A DNA stretch of 32,730 bases, taken from Trichosphaerium sp. ATCC 40318. Taxonomy: Eukaryota > Protista > Tubulinea. The notes under the pieces are model-generated. The model was not told the DNA's origin. It ran no database searches and worked only from the letters and a program-made list of their open reading frames with translations. A program made the position numbers and the translations under genes. Where the stretch lies: the NCBI GenBank assembly GCA_038496445.1, contig JALMLS010000532.1, positions 1-32,730 on the forward strand. Direction: 5' to 3'. Below are positions 4,090 to 31,346 of the stretch, piece by piece (position 1 is the stretch's first letter; each line of letters starts with the position of its first letter).

Positions 4090-7000
4090 ATGTCATCCTT
4101 AGATAAAGCTTCTATATATACTTGCGGGCACTTTGCCGGCAAAAAAGGTTCACCTAATCGTGTTATTCGGTTAGTTAACTAATATTGTTTTGACAGTCGC
4201 GAAACTCGCTGATCCAGAGTGTATGGCTACCGGCGCGAGGTTTACAGCGGTTACAAGTACGATTGTTATTAAAACATACAGTAAGGGCCGTTAACGGACA
4301 AAACTAAGGTCACAGATCTCTATACGCATGGGGGTACCCATCAGAAAGAGCTCTAGGGCTTACAGCGAACTGGGTGAAAAAGAGCCAGCTGTAGTAGATG
4401 GAGTATCAGATGTAGCTCAATTAGACGCTGGAGTGAGTAAAATCATTGCACGCACACGTAAGTTCGATATTGGTGACATTATGTTAACTCCACTATGTGA
4501 AGGTACTGGTTACGTCTTCGTCTTAGAGCCAAATGAAGCAACCTTGAAAGCAACTCGCATTCAAAACTTTATTGGTACACCAGTGTATGTCAAAGGCTTT
4601 TTTTTGGTATATTTTGTTAAACTTGCCCTAGTATGGTGTCTTGTGGTGCTAGCCACTTTGCAATTGTAACACGTACGTTGGAACACTTTTTTTTTGGATT
4701 TTTGGAAAACTTGACTCTTTTTCTTGTTTTTTGGATTTTAGCGGTATTGTTAAGTTACTCTTTTTCAGAAAATGGATTGGTTTATACATGGGGTGAGGGT
4801 AGATATGGTAGACTTGGTCAAGGTGATGAAGTCTCTAGAAAATCACCAGTACAAGTCAAATCACTTAAATACGTTAAGTCCATATCTTGTGGCCGAGAGC
4901 ACACTCTTGCATTGTTGAGTACGACTGTTTTAATAGATTCATATTCTAAATATGTCTGTTAATAGGTAGTGGTGAAGTTCAAAGCTTTGGATTTGGTGGT
5001 AATGGAGCTCTTGGACACGGAGACAATTGCAACCAGCTTTTGCCAAAGAAAATTGTTGATATGCCTACAGCTGTTCAAATATCTGCTGGTGCTATTCATA
5101 GTTCAGCTGTATCAAAGGATAGTAATCTTTATACTTGGGGATCGTCCTTTCGCGGAGCGGTACGTTGTAGTGACTCAATTTGAGTATAAGTAAGCATGAC
5201 TAAAAGTTTGTTTAGTTAGGACAAGGTAAAAAAACAATGATTAAGATTCCAGTCAAAGTTGAAGGTACCTTAATATTTATTTTACCACCTATTAACCCTT
5301 ATATGTTCAAGGTATATCCAACGTATCGCAAGTATCATCTGGATACTATCACATGGCCTTTGTATCGGGTAAGTGATTGTTAATTTTAGTTCATTTGCTG
5401 ATTTTATTTCCAAAGAGTACGGAGAGTTATACACTTGTGGATCTGGTTACAGCGGCAAATTGTGTCATGAAGACGATAATGATTACAATGTTCCTACGCT
5501 TGTAAAATATATGGTGGGTAAACCAGCGTTTCAAGTATCATGTGGATTTCTGCACACATCAGTACTGCGTAAGTGGTGAACTTTGAAACGTCTTTGTCTC
5601 ATTTTTTTAATAAGTGAACATGATTGGACTTCTGAAGCGTATTGAGAAACAAGGAAATATCAGAGAGTATCTTGTTTGGTTAATCAGAAAAGGAGATTCA
5701 CATATAGATATGGCCAAGGCAGCTTTAACACATGTGTTATCCAGACCTATGAATCACTTGGGTACCTTTTTTTTAGTAAAAATCTTCTGTTTTATGTTTA
5801 ACATTCTTTAAGGTCTTGTTGTGTCAAAGAATCAAAATCTATTACACATATCGTCAATGGCTGGTAATAAAGCGTTTGTGAGTCATCTATTGGGTTTAAA
5901 GGAGGCTTCGGACTCTTCATTGAACCTCGACAAGCAAGGTACCTTGCAAAACAATTTTGTTTATTTTTATGCTCATATCTTATCTTGTAGATGATAAGGG
6001 AAATACTGCCTTGCATTTAGCTGTTGAATACGGAAAATTAGATATTGCAAAGATGCTTATTAAGGCTGGTACTGATGTTGAGATAATTAACAGAAACGGT
6101 GAAGACGCTTTTGATCTTGCAAGTAACTTACAAGTCCAACAAAACTTGAAAGGTAAAAAACTGTTTCACAGAAAATTGTTTTTTTTTTTGACACGTGTAT
6201 AGTTTTGGCTGGAAAAAAAGATGTGTTCATCAGTTATGGTGTATCTAGTAAAGCAACAGCTTTCTGTAGACGTATTAAGGATTCTCTTGAAAGCAATAAT
6301 ATCTTGTGTTGGCTTGATGAAAAGGAGCTGAGAGCGGGAGCCGAGTACGTCAAATGGTTGTGAACTTTTATCAAAGTTCATTGTGTCAATTGTTTTGGTA
6401 TGACGTTAATATTTGGTTTAGTTGGGTTAATGAGCTTAAGAAAGCAGTTGCCAAATGCCCTGTTATGGTGTTTGTTGTAACTAAAAAATCAGTTAAATCA
6501 GAGCACTGTAAGATGGAACTAGAGATTGCTCTCAAGGCGAAGAAACATATATTCCCTATTATTTTAGAAACAGCTGACTTATCATCTCAGCCATTCTCGG
6601 TAAGTTAAGAGTAAATTTTGAAGTGACAGAGTTCTTGATATTAACAAAAATCCAACAGAGTCTGCAAGATCGTCAATGGGTTGATTTTCAGAACGCTTCT
6701 TTTGACGTTCAGATAGCCAAGGTTGTCAAGGCTATTAGGACAAAGATACATAACAAGGGTGTCAGTAATTATAGTCTATCTTCCTCAGATACATCCGTTG
6801 TCGAAGAAAAACAAGATGTTTTGAAGAGGAAACCTTTTGGGACAAAAAGGAAGTATAATTTTTCTTCATCTTCATCATCGTTTTTCAAGTTCGGTGATAG
6901 CTTCCAGACAAAGAAAGTAGATGAAGCACCTGAAACACGTGCACCAGATCGTACGTTCATTGTTGTATTAAAGTACTTTTAATGGTTAACACGTGATCTA

Positions 7001-8416
7001 TAGACATTAAAGTAACTGTTGTTCATCAAATCTCTGAAGGGTTTTTCACAGCTCAGTTTTTAAGTGGTGTTCGTATTGCTACAGCTGAACTTGGCATAGA
7101 GCTTGTAGTATCAGATAGTCAGGTATTATAATTATCTATACTTATGTAACTCTCTAAAAATGAGAAAGGGACAAGTAACAAAGATGATTGGTCAGCTTGG
7201 TGAAGCCATCCAAACAAACTCAACAGCAATTATTATCAATCATGGGTATGCTCCTTTGTTGTTTCCTTCTGTGCTTCATGTTTCAAGATGTAAGATCTCG
7301 ACTGATCCTTTGTTTTTTAGGTTTTCTGTAGAGTTGTCACCTGTTATTGAACTTGCTCTTGAGCGCGGTATAAAGGTCATTGCGTTTGATTTTGGAATAC
7401 AAAATCCTGATGTTACTGAGATTGAACAAGATGACTTTATGCTATCACTAAAACTTTGTCGTGAATTGGCAAAGGATCATAGTGGTAGTGCTAATGTATT
7501 CTACTTTAAAAACAAACAAGGATTCGCACCTTTGGAGAAAAGAAACAAGATATGGCAATCAGTAAAATGGAGGTAAGAAATAAACAAAATTCACAGAATT
7601 AAACAGACGGCAACTTTTTAACGCTTTCTCAGGTTTCCTGGTCTCAACGAAATTGCAATTCCTAATACATTAGCTGATAATCCAGAACATCAAATCGCTG
7701 ATTTCTTACAAAACCATCCTGAAGGAAACGCTGTAAGAGAATGTCAAAACCTAACTTAAAGAAACTTAAACTAACCAATCCTTCAAGGTTTTGTCAATGT
7801 TTAACCTATGGACAAAAGGCGCATTCAAAGTACGCTTTATTAGAAATTCTATTATTTCAATATATTAAAAGAATACAGGCTATCACAGCAGCTGGTGTAG
7901 AGAGTAAATTCTCACTTTATTCTTGTGATATTGATGATGAAGATATCGAGTTAATGATTAGAAAGGGTAGCCCTTGGAAGGCTAGTATTGCTGCTAATCC
8001 AGCTTCAATCGGAAGATTATCTGTATTCGCTGCTTATGCCATGATAAGCGGTATAGCTATTGGGAAGTACATTCTATTTGAGCCAACACTTGTAACTCGT
8101 CAGTTTCTTGTTGAAAATAAGATTAGTGACTTTTCAAGCCTTGTAGACAAGCTCCCAGGTTTTGGTCAAGATATTCTACTTGTACGTAGTTCAAGAATCG
8201 ACAAATCTTCTTATGTTGAACAGCCGTTTTTGAACACGTGTTTTTTTCTTCTCAAGAATTTTTTTCGCTAAAGTTGGTTTGTTTTAGGAGCAGTACGATT
8301 TCATGCGTACAGTCAAGACCAAGAGTGAGAAAAGGAATGAAATGCGATCGAAGAAAGTAGATACAACATCAGCCAAAGCTGGACAGGTTGCCAAGAGGCG
8401 TAAGTTCAGATACTAA
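4090..8416 (+). CDS. RCC1 repeats - ankyrin repeats - TIR domain - type I periplasmic (sugar) binding protein fusion, multi-exon
   Basis: RCC1: VYTWGEGRYGRLGQGDE, ISCGREHTLAL, VSCGFLHT. Ankyrin: NQNLLHISSMAGN, GNTALHLAVEYGKLDIAKMLI. TIR: DVFISYG...CWLDEKELRAGADWVNELKKAVAKC...SVKSEHCKMELEIA...IFPIILE...RQWVDF. Solute-binding domain: AIIINHG, GIKVIAFD, EIEQDDF, GFAPLEKRNKIW, DIDDEDIELM..GSPWKASIAANPASIG. GT-AG introns join the domains in frame (e.g. 6153-6202, 6951-7003). An alternative last intron could extend the stop to about 8454. Confidence 0.88.
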
Positions 8417-8499
8417 GCGATTAAGATACGAATTGTAATTCTTTGCAAAAATAAAAATGAGCGAAAATACAGATGGTACAAGTTCTAGTTTTAGTTTCG

Positions 8500-9583
8500 T
8501 TACAAGATGGTACAAGTTCTTTGAGGTTCTTGTTCTATTTTTACAGGAGAAGTTACTTCTTTCTCTTGTTCTTCGTCTTGATCTGGGTATTGCCACTCAG
8601 ACTCTCTACCTGATCAAAACAATAAGTTTTTGGAGAATTTTAACAAAAGAAGTTTAAGAAGTTCTTTTAGTTTTGCCTCGTATCGGCTTGTTTCTCGGTA
8701 GTATAAGATTTCTTAGTAAAAAAAATAGAATACGAGAAATGAACAGATGCATACCAAGAATATTAGGCGCATCTCTAAACGTGAAATTGAATCGCAGTTG
8801 TTTGCATTCTTCTGGTAAAAAAGAAGGGGACGTATCACTATATACTTCATGTACGCAGTGTTTCAGCATTCTATTTGGACCTCCCCATACTATGATGTCT
8901 CCAGAGTCTAGTCTTATATCACATTCTTTATCATCAAGAACATATCCAAACCTACAAGAATTCCCAATACTACACTGTATCAGTATGATTTTAACCATGC
9001 TCAAAGCTAGCGCTAAGAACTAAGGTAGTGATATATCGCTGTGGGGAGCACATAGCGATTATTAACGGCGACGTTTATGCTCACCTTATTGAAATAATTG
9101 GATGATCATTGTCACCATCATTTGGGTCATCGTCACTATGCCATGACATGCCTACATCTCATCGTTATCTCATTGCTGCTTTGCAATTATACATACCTTG
9201 TGCATCTGCGTAATGGAGCAATAGGAGATGGGTTGGATTCATATTTGGCAAACTGTCATCAACCGTTTGACATTTGTCAATTATTTGACCACACAAAGTT
9301 GTAATGGTTTCTGGGTGTTCAAAGTTTCTTACTGCATCGTATATCCGGCCTCTAGACCAGCTCGCATTAAGTACACGTTTTCCTTTCCACGTTGTTGTCC
9401 AAAATCCGTTTTTAGTTCGTGCACCTGCCTTAGAGGCGTTAGTAGGTATTATCATGCGTTTAAGGGCACTTTAGCGGCGTATGTTGCTAGCCATGCTTGA
9501 GCGTCTTCTGAGAGTGTATTTTTTAGTAATACTACCCCAGGTGCTATTGATAATGCGCCAGTGTCGTCTAGAGTGAACTCCAT
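8500..9583 (-). CDS. AlkB-like 2OG-Fe(II) dioxygenase, multi-exon, with C-terminal CaaX (CTIL)
   Basis: Motifs GMSWHSD (HxD), PIISISIGNSCRF, LDSGDIIVWGG..RMLKHCV (distal His) and RFNFTFR. Predicted last exon GRESEWQY...PQRTCTIL*. Confidence 0.85.
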
Positions 9584-9780
9584 TTGTTTTGTTGCCTTGT
9601 AATACAATTTTAGTTGAAAACTAGTTTTTCACAGAAGTTTCTTCATTTTGTCACGTGATTCATTTTAATAAACAGAAGCTACTTCACAGCACTTTTGTAG
9701 ATTCTTTCAGTTACTGCACGTAAACAATCGTCACAGTAGCTCCTGATAACAGGCTACGTACTATCAATCTTATAGCTGGC

Positions 9781-10591
9781 ATGGACGCGGATCCTATTAC
9801 GTATTTGTTTTTTATGTCTAAAACACTCTAATGGCACAACTAGGAGCGTTTTAGACTTACCACCAGAGATCCTTGCAAATATCCTAATTCATACAACAAA
9901 AGCACGCTTTCGTGCTTGCCAAACATGTCACAGGCTTGCCTCTATCGTTCATGATGTTATAGGATATGAAAGAGTTAAATTATGGAAACTTTCCCAAGCT
10001 GTAGCAATATCAAAGTATTGTGGTGTTTTGAGACACTCAAAGATAAGAGTAATTCACTCTTTAAATAGAGATACATCATATTATGATCCTATTGCAAGGC
10101 AATTAGTTGGTGTACATAGTATAGACTTAACTAATGCTGTTATATCTGTTAAAGGGATTAAAAGACTTGCTGGAGTTCATACAATATGTCTTAGAAGCGC
10201 CACTGTAACGGATGAAGGTGTTGAGGCTTTGGCTGGAGTTCATACTATTGATCTAGCTTATTGTAAAACAATAACAGACAAAAGCATCAGAGCATTGAGC
10301 GGCGTTCATACCATTAACCTTGATAGTACCAATGTAACAGATGAAGGCATTAAGGCTCTTAAGGGCGTCCATAGTATTTTCCTTGAGTTTACTCGTGTAA
10401 CAGATGAAGGCATAAAGGTCCTTGCTGGCGTTCATACTATTAACCTCCGTTACACTTCTATTACAGATGAAGGCATAAAATCTCTTGTGGGTGTTAGTAA
10501 GATTTATCTTGAAGGTTCTATGGTAACTAAACAAGGCTTTAAAATACTAGAGGGCAGTTTTAGTGATTTGACATTATTGTATCAATCTTGA
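9781..10591 (+). CDS. F-box + leucine-rich repeat protein
   Basis: Exon 1 is 9781-9800 and the intron is 9801-9843. F-box VLDLPPEILANIL..RACQTCHRL is followed by about seven 22-23 aa repeats of the type LAGVHTIDL..T.VTDEGIKAL. Confidence 0.88.
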
Positions 10592-10649
10592 CAATAAAAC
10601 TGATGCTAATGGGTTGCATATGTTCTTTAAGTTCGAGTAAAAACTGTTG

Positions 10650-10805
10650 TGTTATGATGCAGATTTATTATCAAAGCGTGTTTATTAAGAATTACGACAA
10701 TTACAAAAGTTACAAAGCGAGAAATAATATTGTGGTATTTGATTCAGTGAAAGAGAAAAGGGACTTCGCTGAAGATATGAATCTTAAGTTAGGTACAACT
10801 TAACA
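10650..10805 (-). repeat. 3' LTR (156 bp)
   Basis: Identical to 17236-17391 except G10676 versus A17262. TGTTA...TAACA termini. AATAAA on the minus strand at 10681-10686. Confidence 0.97.
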
Positions 10806-11710: not shown

Positions 11711-14700
11711 TTATTTTGCTGAAAGCTCCATCCTAATTTTCATTTGGGAAGTGTTCTTATCTTGCGCCCATCTTTTAGCAATAGTGATAAGAGCTTGTTT
11801 GCTGTTTGCCGTTCTAACTTCTTTTCGGAGTTTCTTTCTTTGGTTAGTATTTGCAATGTACCCTTCAATAATTGAATACATTGGTGGCTTGTAGTTAGTT
11901 GGTTCGTTCGTTTTAGTGCCTTCCATTTTGGTAAGTAACCGTTGTAGTTCTATTTGAAATGTATCTGCTACATTCGCTGTTCCTGCGGTTCTAGGTGACC
12001 TACGAATTCGTCGTGGTGGAGTAATTGGTACTTCTGGTGTGAAATAATCTTCTGTGTTATTATCGTTCAGTTCTATTGTCCCTTGTGATATGTTCTTTTT
12101 TTCGCGCGAAACTTCATCCGAATTTTTAACAGATATAACCGGAGCGTTTTGTAATTTATATCTTCGCCAATTTTCATCCTCTTCTTCACTGATATCATCT
12201 TCGCTACTTACTTTGGAGCTTGTTTCGCTGTTTGAGATGCTAATTTCTCCACTAACACTCTCGCTTTGACTTAATTCTCCACTGCTGTTTGTAGCGTCAT
12301 TTTCTCCGTTATCAAGGTTGACGTCAATATCGTCTACACCTCTTGGTAATGGTGGCGCTTTTGTCGTTTGTTGTTGCCCAGTATTTCTAAATTCAATATC
12401 ATAATCATCATCATCTGAGTCTGATTCTTCTGAATTCTTTGGTAGCGGCTTTGTAATAGGTCTATTTAATGTTGTACTGACTTCAAACGGTGGGTACATA
12501 GTACTTTGTTCTATGTTTCTGTCTTCTCGTTCATTATATTTTTTTAAGAATTTTATGCTAACTACATTGTGCATCCGACTCTGGCTTTTGAAGTTAAGCT
12601 TGTATGCATTCGTGTTAATACGTTTTAACACCACATATGGGCCTTTCCATCGGTGTTGTAATTTCTTCGTTAGGCCCGGTGTGGGGTTGTACTGCCACAT
12701 CAGAACTTTGTCACCAACATTGAATACTGTTGTATTTGTATGTGAATCGTGATTCACTTTTGCTTTCTCTGCTGCTTCTAGCATTTTAGTTCTTGCTAAT
12801 TGATGTGATTTTTGTAGGGCCTCAACCATTCGTGATCTGTATAACTTTAACGTTGTTGGTTGTTCATGTATTACATTTAAATCCAGCGGTCTTCTTGGAT
12901 GTCGTCCAAACATTAAAAAGAATGGTGTTTCTCCTGTCGCTACATGATGTGTGGTACGATATGCCTGTAAGCATTGTGGTAAGTATTCATCCCAGTCTGT
13001 TTGAAACTCTTGATCACAGAATATGCCTAACATTTCTGCAAGAGTATGATTAAATCGCTCAACTTGTCCATCGGTTTGAGGATGGTATGAGCTTGTGGAA
13101 AGCTTGCGAATCTTGAACAGTTTTAATAAATCCGTCATTAATTCACTTAAGAATTGTGACCCTCGATCTGTAAGTAACTGTTCCGGATAGCCGAATCTTG
13201 CAATGACTCGATCAAATAGTAATTTTGCAATTACTTCTGTTGTTGGGTTATAACACGCAAATGCTTCAACCCATTTCGTGAAGTAATCACAGAAAACAAC
13301 TATACTGTTATTTCCCAATCTTGTTGTTTTCATTGGTCCGACAATATCAATTGCAAGTCGTTGCCAAGGAAAACTGGCAATCATTGGCATTAATTTACCT
13401 TGTTGTTTTCCTCGCTTGATCTTTTTCGTTTGGCAAAGTTTGCAACTGTCAATATACTTCTTAATTTGACTGTAAAATCCTGGCCAATAATAGTTGGACC
13501 TAATTGAATTAAAGGTTTTGAAGAATCCTAGATGACCATTGTTGTCGTGATGGCTCATCAGTACTTCTGATATTAATGATTTCGGTATCACAATCTGTGA
13601 TACTTCTGCTTTGACTTTTGGTACTGTTGGTAACCATATGTGGTTGAGAATTCCATCATCGTTTATCCACATGAATCTTGATAGTGCAGCTACATTACGT
13701 GCTGTTGTTTGGTCTTTAGGTAATGTTTTGGTTTTGAGATATGTTGTGATATCTCTACAAAACTGGTCATGGCTTTGACACACTTTGAGTCTTTCGATGC
13801 TGAATCCAGTTTGTTCTTCATTTGTTGTATCTTTGATGAATGGTGGACGCGATAATGCGTCAGCGTTGCCATGTAACTTTTCCGCCCGTTGTTCGATTGT
13901 GAAATCGTATTCTTGAAGTGCAAAGATCCATCTTGCGTATTTTTGACACACGTGCTTAGTGGTTAACAGCCACTTTAGTGATTCGTGGTCTGTTATTATT
14001 CTTACTTTGTTGCTGGCAATATATGGTCTATATCGTTCAGCTGCTTTAATTACGGCTAAGCACTCTTTTGCTGTTGTTGAATAATTTCGTTCAGCTTTGT
14101 TCAAACTCTTACTGAAATAGGATATGACTGACTCAATGTCGTTCTTTCTTTGAGCTAGTACTGCACCTATGCCTACGTTTGAGGCGTCTGTGTACAGTAT
14201 GAATGGAAGTTCAAAATCCGGATATCCCAATATAGGGGCATTGCATAAGGCTTCTTTTAATTTGTTTATGCTATGATCTTGCTTTTGTGTCCATTTAAAC
14301 TGCATGTCTGATTTCAGCAATTCATATAGTGGATATGCGATTTCTGTATATTTGTCTACAAACGAGCGATAATAGTTTGAGATCCCCAAGAATGACCTTA
14401 GGTCTGGTACATTCGTAGGTGGTGTCATATTCACAATTGCCTCTATTTTTGTTTTATCAGGTTTAACGCCATGTTGAGTTACTACATGACCCAGATATTT
14501 AACTTCTGGTACACAAAATTTGCATTTCTTTGCGTTGAGTGAGTGCGAGTATTTGTCAAATCGTTTGAATACTAATGCTAGTGCAAGCAAGTGTTGGTTG
14601 AATGTCTTAGTGAATATGATGATGTCGTCAATATAAACTAATGCATACTTCCATGTCAACCCATTAAGAAGTACTTCCATATATCTCTGGAACGTGGCGG

Positions 14701-17122
14701 GTGCATTGACTAATCCAAAAGGCATCCTGTTAAATTCGAATAATCCAAATTTTGTAGTGAATGCTGTCTTTTGTTTATCTTGTTCTGCAACCTCTATATG
14801 CCAATACCCACTAGGTTGGTCTAATGTGGTAAAATACACGGCTCCTGCAACAGAGTCTAGTGCTTCCTCTACTCGTGGTATTGGGTAAGAATCTTTCTTA
14901 GTTAGACCATTTAATTTTCGGTAGTCCACACAGAAACGAAGTGTTCCGTCGCTTTTTGGGGCTATTACCACTGGAAATGCCCATGGTGAATTGCTTTCAC
15001 GTATTATTCCGTCTTCCAGCATGGTGTTGATCCGGTTCCATAGGTAGTCTGCTTCAGATGGTGATACTCGGTATGGTTGGTTTTTGACTGGACGTGCATC
15101 TCCTGTTACAATGTTGTGTGCTGGCATTTTGGACCTGGGGGGGCGCTTCGTGTTTTTAATAAACAGGTGACGGTATCTTGCGAGAAATGCCATTAGGAGC
15201 AGCTTTTGTTCGTCATTGATATTACTGTTCGAGAAGTCAAACATATCTCTGATCCCTTCAATATCACTGCTAAGTGTTTTCATGTCTTTTAAATCATCAA
15301 TTATTGACTTTGCTTCTTTGAGTTCTGTTGATCTGATAGCGTTAATTCTATTTGACTGCATCCAACTTCCAGTTGCAATCTTTAAACCCTTTGAAACTCC
15401 CATTGTCTCATTTGAGAAGTTCGCTACCTTAATACCAGTGTGTCCTCCGTGTACCATTACTATTGCCCGTTCGACTGCTGTTCCGTGTATATTACGGAAC
15501 CTTTTGTCTGGTTCGATCATCATTACTCCTGATGAGGTGAGCGAGTGTGTTCTGACTGGCACAAATGAGTATGATCTTGGTGGTAATTTTACTTCATGTG
15601 TAACAAATAGTGTTTGGTCTTGTTTGTTTGTTTGACCACGAATGCATGGCGAATTGATGTTTGGGTTGTTATTGAAGATCAGTTGATAATTGGGGGCATC
15701 AATCGTTATTTTCATGGATAGAATAGTATCCATACCAATGAGTGGTTTGTCAAAGTCATCTACTACGATAAATCTAATCCAACATGGTTTTGATAGTCCG
15801 ATTGTAACTTGAAACATTATCGTTCCCATTATTTTAAGTGGTTCATGTCCAGCTCCTTGCAATGTTGCTTTGGTTGGTTGCAATTTTGTGATCCCCATTT
15901 GTATAATATCCTTGTATGGGAATATGCTTCGTACTGCTCCTGAATCTACAATGGTTTCCATAGTGACTCTTCCTGTTTTGTTTGCAAAGGTGGCTAATGT
16001 GGATAGCACCGATGTTGCCTGACTATTTGCTGACTTGATCATATAAACTGGATAGTTACCATTTTCTTCTTCAAACTCATCATTGTAATCATCATATATA
16101 TTGGGTTCGTTGTCATAGTATTGATCCTCTCCCTCGTTTGTAATCATTCGTATGTATTGTCCTTGTTGTTGGTTACGGGATTGTTGTCCCTGAAATCGTT
16201 GGTTTGATCGGTTATTGTTATTATTGAATCTGCGGCGAAATCCATTGCCTCGTCTTGGTCGTTGTTGATAACGGTTATACTGGGGGTTATAACGAAATGG
16301 TCCTTGTTGTCTGTTGTTAAATTGTCTTCGTCTTTGTTGGTTAGGGCAATTGCGAGCTATGTGTCCGGTTCCATTGCAGTTATAACATCTGATGTTTGGA
16401 TTGTTCGGTTGTTGTACTACATTAATAGTGCTTGGTACCGGTGTCGGTGTTGGAGCTTGTACCGTGGCCTTTATAGTACTCATGACACTGACATGAAACA
16501 TAGCTACCTCAGCGGCCTCTTGGGCTGATGCTGGTCTTTGTAAAAGCACATATTGTGCCAATTCTGAGGGCATAAGCTTTAAGCAAAATGCATCTCTGAG
16601 TTGTGTTGGATCGTGAATGCGTGCTTCTCGTGCTGCAATATGGAATCGTCCGCTAAAACTACCAATATCCTCTCCCAACTGCATTTTTAATGATGCAAAC
16701 TCATGCTTTTTCAAAACTGCATTTGTTTTTCTGCCATAACGCTCTAACAGGTTTTTAACAATCTGGGTCCAAGCCATACTCGAGATGCTTGAACCGTCAG
16801 CAGGCTTGATACGGTCGAGTGCTTCACCAGTGATGTGGTTACGCAAAACAATTTCGTATTGGGTAATTTCCCAGTTACTGAAAGTACTTATGGACTTGAT
16901 CTTATCAAGCCAATCCTCAACGCTGATTTTGTCTACTAATCTGTCACCTGTGAAGGCGCGTAGAGAACCTTTAGGTATTGATGGGTATTTTGGTTGGACA
17001 TAAACAGGAAGTTCATTCGCTAAAATCGGATTTCCGTCCTCTCCTACTGCTGCAACGCGTGCTTTAAAAACCGGCTTATACACCTCGATGGCGTCGTTGA
17101 TATCCACTAACTGTTCTAACAT
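11711..17122 (-). CDS. gag-pol: Single-ORF Gag-Pol polyprotein (1803 aa)
   Basis: Zinc knuckle CYNCNGTGHIARNC, protease IVDSGA, RT (LRFCVDYRKLN, MPFGLVNAPATFQ, YIDD), RNase H (YTDAS), integrase (HHCC, IDIVGP, TDRGSQF, ERFN) and a GPY module. Confidence 0.97.
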   Translation of the reverse strand: MLEQLVDINDAIEVYKPVFKARVAAVGEDGNPILANELPVYVQPKYPSIPKGSLRAFTGDRLVDKISVEDWLDKIKSISTFSNWEITQYEIVLRNHITGEALDRIKPADGSSISSMAWTQIVKNLLERYGRKTNAVLKKHEFASLKMQLGEDIGSFSGRFHIAAREARIHDPTQLRDAFCLKLMPSELAQYVLLQRPASAQEAAEVAMFHVSVMSTIKATVQAPTPTPVPSTINVVQQPNNPNIRCYNCNGTGHIARNCPNQQRRRQFNNRQQGPFRYNPQYNRYQQRPRRGNGFRRRFNNNNNRSNQRFQGQQSRNQQQGQYIRMITNEGEDQYYDNEPNIYDDYNDEFEEENGNYPVYMIKSANSQATSVLSTLATFANKTGRVTMETIVDSGAVRSIFPYKDIIQMGITKLQPTKATLQGAGHEPLKIMGTIMFQVTIGLSKPCWIRFIVVDDFDKPLIGMDTILSMKITIDAPNYQLIFNNNPNINSPCIRGQTNKQDQTLFVTHEVKLPPRSYSFVPVRTHSLTSSGVMMIEPDKRFRNIHGTAVERAIVMVHGGHTGIKVANFSNETMGVSKGLKIATGSWMQSNRINAIRSTELKEAKSIIDDLKDMKTLSSDIEGIRDMFDFSNSNINDEQKLLLMAFLARYRHLFIKNTKRPPRSKMPAHNIVTGDARPVKNQPYRVSPSEADYLWNRINTMLEDGIIRESNSPWAFPVVIAPKSDGTLRFCVDYRKLNGLTKKDSYPIPRVEEALDSVAGAVYFTTLDQPSGYWHIEVAEQDKQKTAFTTKFGLFEFNRMPFGLVNAPATFQRYMEVLLNGLTWKYALVYIDDIIIFTKTFNQHLLALALVFKRFDKYSHSLNAKKCKFCVPEVKYLGHVVTQHGVKPDKTKIEAIVNMTPPTNVPDLRSFLGISNYYRSFVDKYTEIAYPLYELLKSDMQFKWTQKQDHSINKLKEALCNAPILGYPDFELPFILYTDASNVGIGAVLAQRKNDIESVISYFSKSLNKAERNYSTTAKECLAVIKAAERYRPYIASNKVRIITDHESLKWLLTTKHVCQKYARWIFALQEYDFTIEQRAEKLHGNADALSRPPFIKDTTNEEQTGFSIERLKVCQSHDQFCRDITTYLKTKTLPKDQTTARNVAALSRFMWINDDGILNHIWLPTVPKVKAEVSQIVIPKSLISEVLMSHHDNNGHLGFFKTFNSIRSNYYWPGFYSQIKKYIDSCKLCQTKKIKRGKQQGKLMPMIASFPWQRLAIDIVGPMKTTRLGNNSIVVFCDYFTKWVEAFACYNPTTEVIAKLLFDRVIARFGYPEQLLTDRGSQFLSELMTDLLKLFKIRKLSTSSYHPQTDGQVERFNHTLAEMLGIFCDQEFQTDWDEYLPQCLQAYRTTHHVATGETPFFLMFGRHPRRPLDLNVIHEQPTTLKLYRSRMVEALQKSHQLARTKMLEAAEKAKVNHDSHTNTTVFNVGDKVLMWQYNPTPGLTKKLQHRWKGPYVVLKRINTNAYKLNFKSQSRMHNVVSIKFLKKYNEREDRNIEQSTMYPPFEVSTTLNRPITKPLPKNSEESDSDDDDYDIEFRNTGQQQTTKAPPLPRGVDDIDVNLDNGENDATNSSGELSQSESVSGEISISNSETSSKVSSEDDISEEEDENWRRYKLQNAPVISVKNSDEVSREKKNISQGTIELNDNNTEDYFTPEVPITPPRRIRRSPRTAGTANVADTFQIELQRLLTKMEGTKTNEPTNYKPPMYSIIEGYIANTNQRKKLRKEVRTANSKQALITIAKRWAQDKNTSQMKIRMELSAK

Positions 17123-17220
17123 ACTAATTCTCGACTAGACTTCTTCGGCACAGAAAACGGCTGTGATCACTTAACTATATTGGACGTGCTTAATTGATAA
17201 AAGTAAGCAGGTAAAAATCT

Positions 17221-17233
17221 GACAGTGTCGCCA
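17221..17233 (-). other. Primer-binding site TGGCGACACTGTC
   Basis: Starts 2 nt inside the 5' LTR boundary and is complementary to a tRNA 3' end ...CAGTGTCG-CCA. A G discriminator is compatible with tRNA-Ser (inference). Confidence 0.8.
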
Positions 17234-17235
17234 AA

Positions 17236-17391
17236 TGTTATGATGCAGATTTATTATCAAAACGTGTTTATTAAGAATTACGACAATTACAAAAGTTACA
17301 AAGCGAGAAATAATATTGTGGTATTTGATTCAGTGAAAGAGAAAAGGGACTTCGCTGAAGATATGAATCTTAAGTTAGGTACAACTTAACA
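17236..17391 (-). repeat. 5' LTR (156 bp)
   Basis: 155/156 identical to 10650-10805. Confidence 0.97.
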
Positions 17392-26520: not shown

Positions 26521-27947
26521 CTAATTCGTGTACATACTTTTGTAGTACTCTTCCATAGATTGCTGTATAGCCGCTTGTTGTAGTTCCCAATCGCTTGTAT
26601 CATTAGCACGTGCTTCCTTTGCAGAACTCTGTAAAATCTGCTGAAAAAGTTGCTCCTCGATATTTTCCTTCTCGGAATCACGAACGACATCTGACATAAC
26701 CATATCGTCAATGTGGTCTCTCTCAGAGCTTTCTTTAACAGCCTCAACAGCGACTTGATCTGCAACCATCTAACAAATACTTAGCACGTGAAAGAAACGT
26801 TGAAGCAAGTATTTGTACGTACACCTGGCTGTAAGTTTGGTAAACCTAGGCCAACACCAACACTTGGGTTTGTTAAATCACGGATACTATTGTAATGGTT
26901 TCCTGCGTGATAACTAAGTCTCATTGGAGGGTCATCTGTGTTGTACTGATCCTGGAATATATTTATAGGTTCTATAAAGTCAAATGAGTTGAGTGTAAAT
27001 CATATGAAAAGCAGTTAAGCTTTTTTTTGACTTGTTTCGTACCTATGTCGTAGCAGTGTATTTCTATTGGTCTATTATACATCTCTGAAAGGGCTTGTAG
27101 CTCTAGGTTGTTACCAAAGCACTTATTTTGCCTCTTGCGGTTAATATACGCTTCAAACTCTTGAGTAACAAATTGGGAATAATGATCGCGTTCTTTCTCC
27201 TACAAAAGCATTACACCACGCGTCCCTATTGACTTCTACATCCTTCTAGAGCTTAGAAAGGATTCAAGCATACCATATAATCCATGCACAAACGTCTGAC
27301 CTCATCATGCATACCCTCATCGCCATAAATTTGGTCCGCTTTGACAGTTTAGTGAAAAATTTTGAGAAGTACAAAAAAACTTTTTCTTATGCTTACCAAC
27401 AGCTCTAAACAAGCAATTACCATCCATAGCGACGCGATACAATGCGTAGTTTTTTTCAGCGCTTAATCTGGCTTCCCAAGCGTCCTCGTCGTATTTCTTT
27501 GTTGGTTAGTTGGTTTTTTTTGGCTCGTAGGGAAGTACGTACTGTGTCGCCTTGTTCTATGGCTGCCATAGCGTTGTACAGAGATTTTACAGTATTACCT
27601 CGTTCATCGTCAGAATTGTACCCGGTGTCATTCTTTGCATTGTTTTGTTTGGGTTCGCGGCGTCTGAGGTCTCTTTTCTTCGGTTGTGGGCAACAACTAA
27701 CGTCACTTTGGCGTTTTTGACCGGAAGTGCGTGTTTGGTGCCTTCGCGTTGCGTTATTGGAGTTGTAGATAGAATTATTGTAATCTTCAATTGTGTAAGG
27801 TTTTTCTTCGGTTTTGTTGGCGGTTTCTTCACTGCTGCTCGGCTGATTGTTTTTTGAGGTGGCTCTGGCGTTATTTAATTTGTTTTCACCTTGATTTGTT
27901 TTTTTTTGAGGTTTCTTAGGATCCTGCGCATCTAAAGTAATGCGCAT
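26521..27947 (-). CDS. OTUD5: OTU-domain deubiquitinase, OTUD5/DUBA-like, with C-terminal UIM
   Basis: Spliced translation gives GYNSDDE, MDGNCLFRAVADQIYGD, CFGNNLELQALSEMYNRPIEI, RLSYHAGNHYNS, VGVGLGLP and UIM-like ELQQAAIQQSMEEY. Confidence 0.9.
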
Positions 27948-30009: not shown

Positions 30010-30999
30010 CTATGTGGTGAGACTCTTTGGATACAATTCTCTTGGTTCGTTTATAGGATCAGGCCATGATAATACAGTATCATCTGGTCGTGGAAACATG
30101 TAACCGCAGTTTAAACATGCCATTACTGTGAACTTTGAGATGAATTTCCGAAATGCGCCTTCATCGTTGTGAACTGCTGATAAATCCAATGCTTTGTCGT
30201 TACACTTAAAGTATTCTATAGCACCGTATGTGAGCAAGTCGTGACTACCTTGAGTTGATAACCATTTACAAACATCAACATGATAACCTTCCACTGCGTT
30301 TTCCATAACTGTATTAACAAATTCATGATGTGCCTCTTCGTTACTTACGTCCACGTGATTAACAAGTAATTTTACGATCTCTAAATGACCATTTCCTCCG
30401 GCAAATTTAGCTGCTAGACAATCAGATCCCATTACATTAGCGCCTTGTTTTAAAAGAAAGGAAACAATTTGTACATGTCCAAATCTGGCTGCATACTTCA
30501 AAGCGTAATCATCGTCTGCGTGAACATCTGCTCCAATAAGGTGTAGCCATTTAACAGTGTTAAAGTGTCCGTTTTGAGCAGCTACGCCTATAGCATATCC
30601 TCCTTTCGCATTTGGATCAGCACCACGCTTAAAGCACCATTGAGCTGCTATCAAGTGTCCATTCTCACATGCACAGCGAAAGGCGTAATCATGGTAGTAT
30701 CTAACGTTCGCTCCATTTTCTACAAGCGTTTGCATAAACTCAACGTTTCCAGTACGCGACGATTCTCCCAGTGCGTTGTCCTTTTCAGATTGAGGCGTAT
30801 CAGCGTGTTTTGCGTACCAATTTACTATTTTTTTTGCTTTTTTCTGTATTGCGTACACCAGGATAGCGCTGTACTTTGCTCCAGGTGCGTATTGGCCTAG
30901 AAAGTCTATTTGGTTTGTTTCAATGACTTCTTTAAGAAGTTTAAGGTCATCTTGTCTAATGGCTTCTCCCGCTTGTTTCATTTTCAAACTTTGCTCCAT
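30010..30999 (-). CDS. Intronless ankyrin-repeat protein
   Basis: 329-aa ORF with 30-aa ankyrin repeats such as GADVHADDDYALKYAARFGHVQIVSFL, and a CxxC near the C-terminus. Confidence 0.9.
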   Translation of the reverse strand: MEQSLKMKQAGEAIRQDDLKLLKEVIETNQIDFLGQYAPGAKYSAILVYAIQKKAKKIVNWYAKHADTPQSEKDNALGESSRTGNVEFMQTLVENGANVRYYHDYAFRCACENGHLIAAQWCFKRGADPNAKGGYAIGVAAQNGHFNTVKWLHLIGADVHADDDYALKYAARFGHVQIVSFLLKQGANVMGSDCLAAKFAGGNGHLEIVKLLVNHVDVSNEEAHHEFVNTVMENAVEGYHVDVCKWLSTQGSHDLLTYGAIEYFKCNDKALDLSAVHNDEGAFRKFISKFTVMACLNCGYMFPRPDDTVLSWPDPINEPRELYPKSLTT

Positions 31000-31346
31000 C
31001 AGAATAGTGTTGACTTTGATCTACTTCACGTGTATGAACTGTCACACACCATAACAATGAACGCTCCATCGTGTTTGCGTAGCGCGGGAACAACTCTTTT
31101 GTCATCCATTGGTAAGCGCTAAACGATTCAAAGTCAAGCTTATTTTCTATCCACAATTAAATCAACAAGTTTCAATTTTTTTGTCTACAATACAAGTTAC
31201 GCCTCTTTTAATTGAGTACTAGTGTACCCAAAAAAATAGAAGATTTCTTTTCGTATCCCTAAAGTCGATGTGAGGAAAACTGCTGTTGACTTCAGAATTC
31301 AACTTCTACTTGCAAAAAGAAGGTGTAACATCGTCTTACTCAACCG

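Follow-up and report, generated by a model that had tools for sequence, protein, structure and literature searches.

The window analysed here, the whole stretch of 32,730 nucleotides of contig JALMLS010000532.1 from Trichosphaerium sp. ATCC 40318, carries on its + strand a gene with the predicted architecture RCC1–ankyrin–TIR–PBP, in which a type I periplasmic-binding-protein (PBP) domain forms the C-terminal part. The N-terminal exons (4328–5568, +) encode RCC1 repeats of the beta-propeller type (Pfam RCC1, E 1e-18 to 6e-10 on three exon frames). They are found in spliced transcript contigs and are collinear with two full-length homologues, P0016 (1044 aa, from the EukProt transcriptome of Arcella intermedia) and P0013 (1043 aa, from an environmental contig of 4.2 kb, on which it is an uninterrupted open reading frame). 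The ATG at 4328 is the candidate start codon. A helical and ankyrin-repeat region follows at 5615–6152 (+; Pfam Ank/Ank_4, E 2e-10), which is also supported by tblastn collinearity and whose exon probably ends at 6152, judging from the GT and the phase. The TIR domain lies at 6203–6599 (+) and is recognized by Pfam TIR_2 on its two exons (E 1e-5 and 2e-9), presumably split by one intron at about 6357–6421. The linker exon between TIR and PBP, 6659–6950 (+), starts with SLQDRQWVDF and is probably preceded by an intron at 6600–6658. On the reading frame and homology the TIR exons would continue into this linker exon; no transcript contig spans those junctions. The linker is joined to the PBP exons in contigs of X1, X3 and X4 (transcript runs described below), which connect 6950 to 7004. 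After the PBP domain (7004–8181, +) a basic C-terminal tail exon with an open frame, 8288–8416 (+), ends with TAA at 8414–8416, and the joint from 8181 to 8288 is present in X2, X3 and X4. Collinearity of the window with P0013 and P0016 (tblastn) extends from about 4576 to 8181, and all three have QWVDF in the linker and S-x-x-C-x-x-E-L in the TIR.

The PBP domain is complete and consists of six short open exons, whose translations remain in phase from IKVTVVHQISEGFF... through ...LPGFGQDILL. Exon 1 (7004–7122, +; IKVTVVHQISEGFFTAQFLSG...) contributes the first strand and helix of lobe 1 and has Gln at the position of a family-invariant Arg. Exon 2 (7169–7245, +) ends with ...AIIINHG. The motifs FDF, EIEQDD and GFAPLEKR lie in exon 3 (7321–7572, +). 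In exon 4 (7633–7732, +) the loop after FPGLNEI is four residues shorter than in the family. Exon 5 (7788–7829, +) reads VLSMFNLWTKGAFK, where the family consensus has MWDEFAKGA, and exon 6 (7879–8181, +), YSCDIDDEDIELMIRKGSPW...IAANP...IGR, forms the C-terminal lobe and the closing helices. The motifs IIINHG, QDD, PLEKR and DIDDEDIELMIRKGSPW, from which the initial annotation had proposed a methylthioribose-binding-like subfamily, are all present in these translations. The domain was analysed exon by exon throughout, in searches and in trees.

Transcript evidence comes from Logan contigs of four public runs (X1–X4; three or four studies, three organism labels), aligned on window positions 4090–8500. 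Contigs from the four runs skip exactly the introns 7123–7168, 7246–7320, 7573–7632, 7733–7787 and 7830–7878, the same five GT-AG introns that had been called from the letters alone. The flanking introns, 6951–7003 upstream and 8182–8287 downstream, are likewise skipped, and three introns of the RCC1 region (4458–4502, 4919–4965 and 5569–5614) are also removed. All transcript-confirmed joints have GT..AG ends. A single contig of 1036 nt covers 6710–8083 with six junctions and differs from the window in one letter. Hence, the gene is expressed, as spliced transcripts of it are present in public runs. At the 3′ end a consensus GTAAGT is found at 8400 (window 8397–8405), just 5′ of the presumed last-exon TAA, and the contigs stop at 8371–8395. 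It could be a further splice donor, so the transcript may be spliced onward and the exon at 8288–8416 is the presumptive 3′ end.

The bacterial-type fold is the only feature that speaks for bacterial contamination or an assembly chimera. Against this, seven spliceosomal introns are removed in transcripts of four runs from at least three studies, the linker-to-PBP junction is present in three runs, the GC content of the PBP domain (0.35–0.36) is the same as that of its flanks, and Arcella and a further contig have the same fusion. The surrounding genes of the window are ordinary eukaryotic ones, with no transporter gene among them. Splicing, host-like base composition, the RCC1/ankyrin/TIR fusion and the eukaryotic neighbours thus exclude bacterial contamination, in agreement with the initial annotation, and we give an artefact of either kind practically no chance.

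Directly downstream, tail to tail with the TIR–PBP gene, lies a spliced gene of an AlkB-like 2OG-Fe(II) oxygenase (8657–9470, −). It is followed by an F-box/LRR gene (9776–10588, +) and by an intact-looking Ty3/gypsy-type retrotransposon reading frame of 1807 aa (11714–17134, −) with zinc knuckle, reverse transcriptase, RNase H, integrase and a Tf2-type SH3 domain. Two segments of about 180 nt flank this element, 10621–10800 and 17207–17386. Their + strand translations contain an identical stretch of 60 residues, and these segments may therefore be its long terminal repeats. Genes of an OTU-type cysteine protease (26975–27505, −), an ankyrin-repeat protein (30013–31020, −) and a TPR protein (1106–1396, −) are found further away.

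Pfam Peripla_BP_4 (PF13407) matches exon 3 over profile positions 68–141 (E 2e-4) and exon 6 over 201–256 (E 0.05), in the expected profile order and in both lobes. These scores are below the Pfam whole-protein cut-off because the exons are pieces of the domain. The full-length homologues P0013 and P0016 match the profile at 6e-22, and all six window exons align end to end with the family. NCBIfam searches with single PBP exons returned noise only. Among all PDB sequences the best match is 4ry8 (exon 3, E 6e-19; exon 6, E 8.6e-24; about 50% identity), entitled 5-methylthioribose (MTR) transporter solute-binding protein TLET_1677 of Thermotoga (Pseudothermotoga) lettingae. The second is 5ulb (2e-5 and 2e-7), and the ribose binders have E>0.05. 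The PBP domain of the Arcella homologue was folded as a stand-in for that of the window (mean pLDDT 95, pTM 0.92). The top structural match of this model is 4ry8 (Z 45.1, rmsd 1.7 Å over 311 residues), followed by 5ulb with Z 40.0; the ribose, galactose and xylose binders reach about 30–34. No other PBP subfamily ranks above the MTR-binding one, either among the PDB sequences or in the structure search.

In a scan of 185,579 prokaryotic species, with one genome per species, only 43 loci of the MTR-binding PBP family were found. Most of them belong to Chloroflexota and Pseudothermotoga, and a few to Thermaceae, Myxococcales, a cyanobacterium, an actinomycete and others. Downstream of the binding-protein gene, Pseudothermotoga and Chloroflexus encode S-methyl-5-thioribose kinase (TIGR01767, E 1e-142 or better) and MTR-1-phosphate isomerase, together with an ABC ATPase, its permease and a transketolase-like protein. 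Of the 43 loci, 24 have mtnK no more than 6 kb away and 21 likewise have mtnA, and many of the others are truncated contigs; the phyla with this linkage include Chloroflexota, Thermotogota, Deinococcota and others. Paper searches on 4RY8 or Tlet_1677 gave nothing directly relevant in the searchable literature, and PMC6079011 does not mention transketolase or transporters. The operon context backs the MTR assignment of the family independently of the title of 4ry8. Its sequence relatives place the window PBP domain in the bacterial family of 5-methylthioribose-binding proteins. The subfamily named at the outset was well chosen: 4ry8 is the top match of both long exons and the top structure for the Arcella domain, and the mtnK/mtnA operons point the same way.

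Other bacterial members combine the MTR-family PBP with GAF, PAS, HisKA/HATPase, REC or STAS modules. In a crude hydrophobicity scan these sensor-type relatives have neither signal peptide nor membrane segment, whereas the transport binding proteins have a signal peptide. These fusions show that the binding domain apparently also works as a cytoplasmic sensor in bacteria.

Eukaryotic homologues are rare. An exhaustive HMMER search with exon 6 as the query through 1.84 billion representatives, including the EukProt collection, gave 101 proteins at E<=1e-3, and only P0013 and P0016 have the eukaryotic architecture RCC1-ANK-TIR_2-Peripla_BP_4. Three short environmental fragments (P0010, P0020 and P0033) are Arcella-like. 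A word-index protein search with residues 660–1043 of P0013 returned the query itself only, and a metagenome scan with TIR-derived patterns found distant TIR relatives and no new fusions. By the crude hydrophobicity scan P0013 and P0016 are without signal peptide or membrane segment, and the window PBP domain is therefore presumably cytosolic. As the domain is an internal C-terminal module behind RCC1 repeats, its homologues have no hydrophobic leader and no transporter is encoded nearby, it is a relative by descent of the ABC-transporter binding proteins and not itself a transport binding protein.

Identity over the summed exons is 35–43% for amoebal and bacterial relatives alike. Since percent identity cannot separate the two, we used maximum-likelihood domain trees, in which window exon 3 and exon 6 are separate rows and the direction and time of transfer are not formally rooted. 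Exon 3 groups with P0013 and P0016 in one clade (100/99), which is nested in a larger, well-supported one (99/99 in the first tree, 100/99 with named bacterial rows) whose remaining members come from named bacterial genomes or are metagenomic proteins of bacterial type. The window domain falls in a 40-row clade (100/99) of operon-linked binding proteins, sensor fusions and the amoebal rows. The amoebal clade adjoins the bacterial sensor-type fusions with moderate support (92/84), at a place where an earlier taxon sample gave no resolution. Exon 6 alone sits outside the amoebal clade, on a long branch whose position close to the transport-type binding proteins is not resolved; the AU test does not reject a tree that unites all four amoebal rows, exon 6 among them (ΔlnL 1.2, p-AU 0.34). 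Exon 6 is 49% identical to the bacterial binding protein P0003 versus 36–39% to P0013/P0016, and the grouping of exon 3 with the amoebal homologues is firm. A simple explanation would be that the C-lobe has evolved faster in the other amoebae.

At 37–49% identity, the three amoebal domains stand as far apart from one another as from the bacterial ones, so the gene is old. Such distances would also fit vertical descent of the PBP domain, without horizontal acquisition, from a gene of early eukaryotic or endosymbiont origin since lost by most eukaryotes. We consider such descent very improbable, however: the amoebal clade is several nodes deep in a narrow bacterial family, the 1.84 billion representatives contain two full-length eukaryotic-type sequences and a few resembling fragments, and very many independent losses would be needed. 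A viral-contig scan found no relative of the PBP domain, and a giant-virus route is therefore without support at that sensitivity. On the simplest reading the domain was captured once from bacteria, long ago, was then fused behind the TIR and later gained introns; it may already have been a cytoplasmic sensor in its bacterial source. The window gene now belongs to a small, old, apparently amoebal clade. Thus, the view of the initial annotation that the domain is horizontally acquired and domesticated stands in respect of bacterial nesting, introns, fusion and host base composition, but the acquisition is ancient and not recent. The eukaryotic clade that might have spoken against transfer does exist, and the window, Arcella and the environmental protein make it up. 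It is, however, a small and apparently amoebal group nested among bacterial sequences.

In the PBP exons all seven differences between the window and the transcripts of other runs (three in exon 3, four in exon 6) are synonymous and fall on third codon positions. The RCC1 exons show four synonymous and two nonsynonymous differences. In this small sample the pattern fits purifying selection on the PBP exons.

The pocket was compared using 23 invariant columns, defined on fourteen close family members. The window keeps 20 of the 23, among them the D of FD(F) (D90), Q103 and the DD of EIEQDD, P-L-x-x-R, D218 of YSxDI, SPW and GR. Three invariant residues are changed, R19Q in helix 1, A196T and D241N (IAANP), as are two near-invariant ones, W192F and D193N (MFNLW versus MWDEF in the family). 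From the conservation and the contacts in the E. coli ribose-binding protein we take these positions to line the cleft. P0013 and P0016 keep the canonical residues at all positions changed in the window, and most of the window variants recur in more distant bacterial members, some of them beside mtnK and mtnA (e.g. L038). The pocket thus appears altered and not degenerate, as would also be expected from the first proposal, and we suggest that it has been retuned by conservative changes. Five changes at presumed pocket positions, together with the four-residue loop deletion, mean that the ligand of the window domain may differ from MTR or bind more weakly; it could be MTR or a related small sugar.

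The same five substitutions at invariant or near-invariant positions and the deletion in a loop expected near the cleft could also indicate that the PBP fold of the window copy no longer binds a metabolite and instead has a structural role behind the TIR, or one in oligomerisation or protein docking. The window copy is indeed the divergent one, since P0013 and P0016 are canonical. However, Arg to Gln, Asp to Asn and Trp to Phe are conservative changes, most of the changes are natural in bacterial relatives, some within mtnK/mtnA operons as in L038, most of the candidate pocket residues are kept, and each of the seven PBP-exon differences is synonymous. We therefore regard the loss of binding as unlikely.

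The window TIR carries SEHCKMELE, in which the conserved Glu is retained; the Glu of SxxCxxEL is also present in the TIR domains of P0013 and P0016. The window TIR aligns weakly to the TLR2 TIR motif SEWCKYEL, and the same Glu occurs in the non-enzymatic TLR2. The window TIR may be an NADase, with the conserved Glu necessary but not sufficient for this activity.

Effector domains of the Thoeris or plant TIR pathways are precedents for receptors of TIR products. By analogy, the PBP domain might bind a ribose-containing TIR product (ADP-ribose or a cyclic ADPR isomer) of its own or another TIR and act in feedback or as a second-messenger receptor. It is covalently linked to a TIR, the ligand of its family is a ribose derivative, and the altered pocket with the shortened loop could suit a different, larger ligand. 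On the other hand, as regards NADase activity the TIR shows a generic motif only, and P0013 and P0016 keep the MTR-type residues. In addition, the family ligand is a small monosaccharide held between two lobes, and a ligand of dinucleotide size would need a much larger cleft. We find a TIR-product receptor improbable.

With moderate confidence we favour the reading that the gene encodes a cytosolic amoebal RCC1–ankyrin–TIR–linker–PBP protein, in which the bacteria-derived PBP of the MTR family would serve as a ligand-gated control of the TIR. An ancestor of several amoebae would have acquired the PBP from bacteria, probably from the cytoplasmic-sensor branch with GAF, PAS or kinase fusions. 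The acquired domain would then have been fused behind the TIR, gained at least five introns, adopted the host base composition and been kept under purifying selection. The two PBP lobes may close round a small ribose-type metabolite, which might be methylthioribose, a related 5-substituted furanose or another furanose. We suggest that this closure would alter the oligomeric or active state of the adjoining TIR, as metabolite binding gates SARM1; control by a ligand-closed PBP would also be analogous to the bacterial PBP–kinase fusions. SARM1 (ARM-SAM-TIR) is an animal metabolite-gated TIR NADase whose ARM-repeat sensor binds NMN or NAD+. It works like the proposed system by analogy only, in that a TIR is placed under a small-molecule domain of the same polypeptide, with no homology outside the TIR.

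The biological role may be prey or pathogen sensing, or a readout of the metabolic state of the cell. Free MTR is excreted by bacteria without MtnK, such as E. coli (PMC6302742), which makes the sensing role plausible but speculative. If the amoeba itself makes free MTR, the protein would report its own methionine-salvage state. A more specific form of the sensing role is a cytosolic pattern-recognition-type receptor of some amoebae, in which the captured bacterial domain would detect MTR or a close relative as a bacterial waste product and the TIR would answer, the window copy with its retuned pocket having shifted to a second ligand. We put this forward tentatively, as a possibility to which we attach rather low probability.

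TIR domains are common to bacterial, plant and animal immunity, and their activating signals are known for few lineages. Here a TIR is joined to a fold known for closing on small molecules, and the family names a candidate ligand that can be purchased, so that a case of protist immunity or prey sensing becomes testable at the bench. The gene is also an example of an old bacterial domain capture verified by transcripts, with introns gained, base composition host-like, the domain fused and kept in at least three apparently amoebal lineages.

Amoebozoan TIR proteins and TIR transfer from bacteria to amoebae have been described (PMC13142454). Dictyostelium TirE (DDB_G0278125) has RCC1 repeats and tandem TIR domains (Culbertson et al. 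2026, PMC13142454). It is thus similar to the window gene as an amoebozoan protein with RCC1 and TIR, but no PBP has been reported in it, and the words ‘periplasmic’ and ‘substrate-binding’ are absent from that paper. In the searchable literature, which covers part of the published work, we found no description of a TIR fused to a periplasmic or solute-binding domain. As amoebozoan RCC1–TIR proteins are already known, what appears to be new here, on the predicted domain order, is a domain-shuffled TIR protein with a horizontally acquired putative sensor module.

Venus-flytrap domains of class C GPCRs, ionotropic glutamate receptors and natriuretic peptide receptors are derivatives of PBP type I related to LIVBP; they are extracellular, ancient and widespread, and are coupled to channels, GPCRs or cyclases. 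Like them, the window domain would be a bacterial-type PBP fold employed as a eukaryotic ligand sensor. Unlike them, it belongs to the ribose/MTR type, is presumably cytosolic, is apparently confined to amoebae and has a TIR as its partner.

With TLET_1677 (4ry8) and the mtnK/mtnA-linked orthologues the window domain shares the fold, the family and the motifs EIEQDD, GFAPLxKR, YSxDI, SPW and GR. Proteins of the TLET_1677 type are secreted or lipid-anchored, stand alone or in tandem, and deliver MTR to an ABC permease. In contrast, the window domain has no signal peptide and no transporter, is C-terminal in a TIR protein, is interrupted by introns, and carries the five changes and the loop deletion. 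The bacterial cytoplasmic sensors, e.g. WP_248341804.1 of Anaeromyxobacter paludicola, form the nearest branch (92/84) and resemble the window protein in that they have no signal peptide and use the PBP as a signalling input. They differ from it in having a phosphorelay or GAF/STAS output, an N-terminal PBP and prokaryotic genes without introns.

In many Chloroflexota the binding protein of the MTR operon has two tandem PBP domains in one polypeptide of about 720–770 aa (L004–L007, L015 and L027–L030; e.g. L006:4780-6942), and P0001, P0002 and P0109 also contain two tandem PBP domains of the MTR-binding family. A more distant branch of the PBP family is found inside the bacterial proteins P0065 and P0074, of about 1200–1280 aa. 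Both have MalT-like TPR repeats, and P0065 has an AAA_16-type ATPase region at its N-terminus. This domain order suggests that they may be STAND-type regulators with a sugar-sensor insert.
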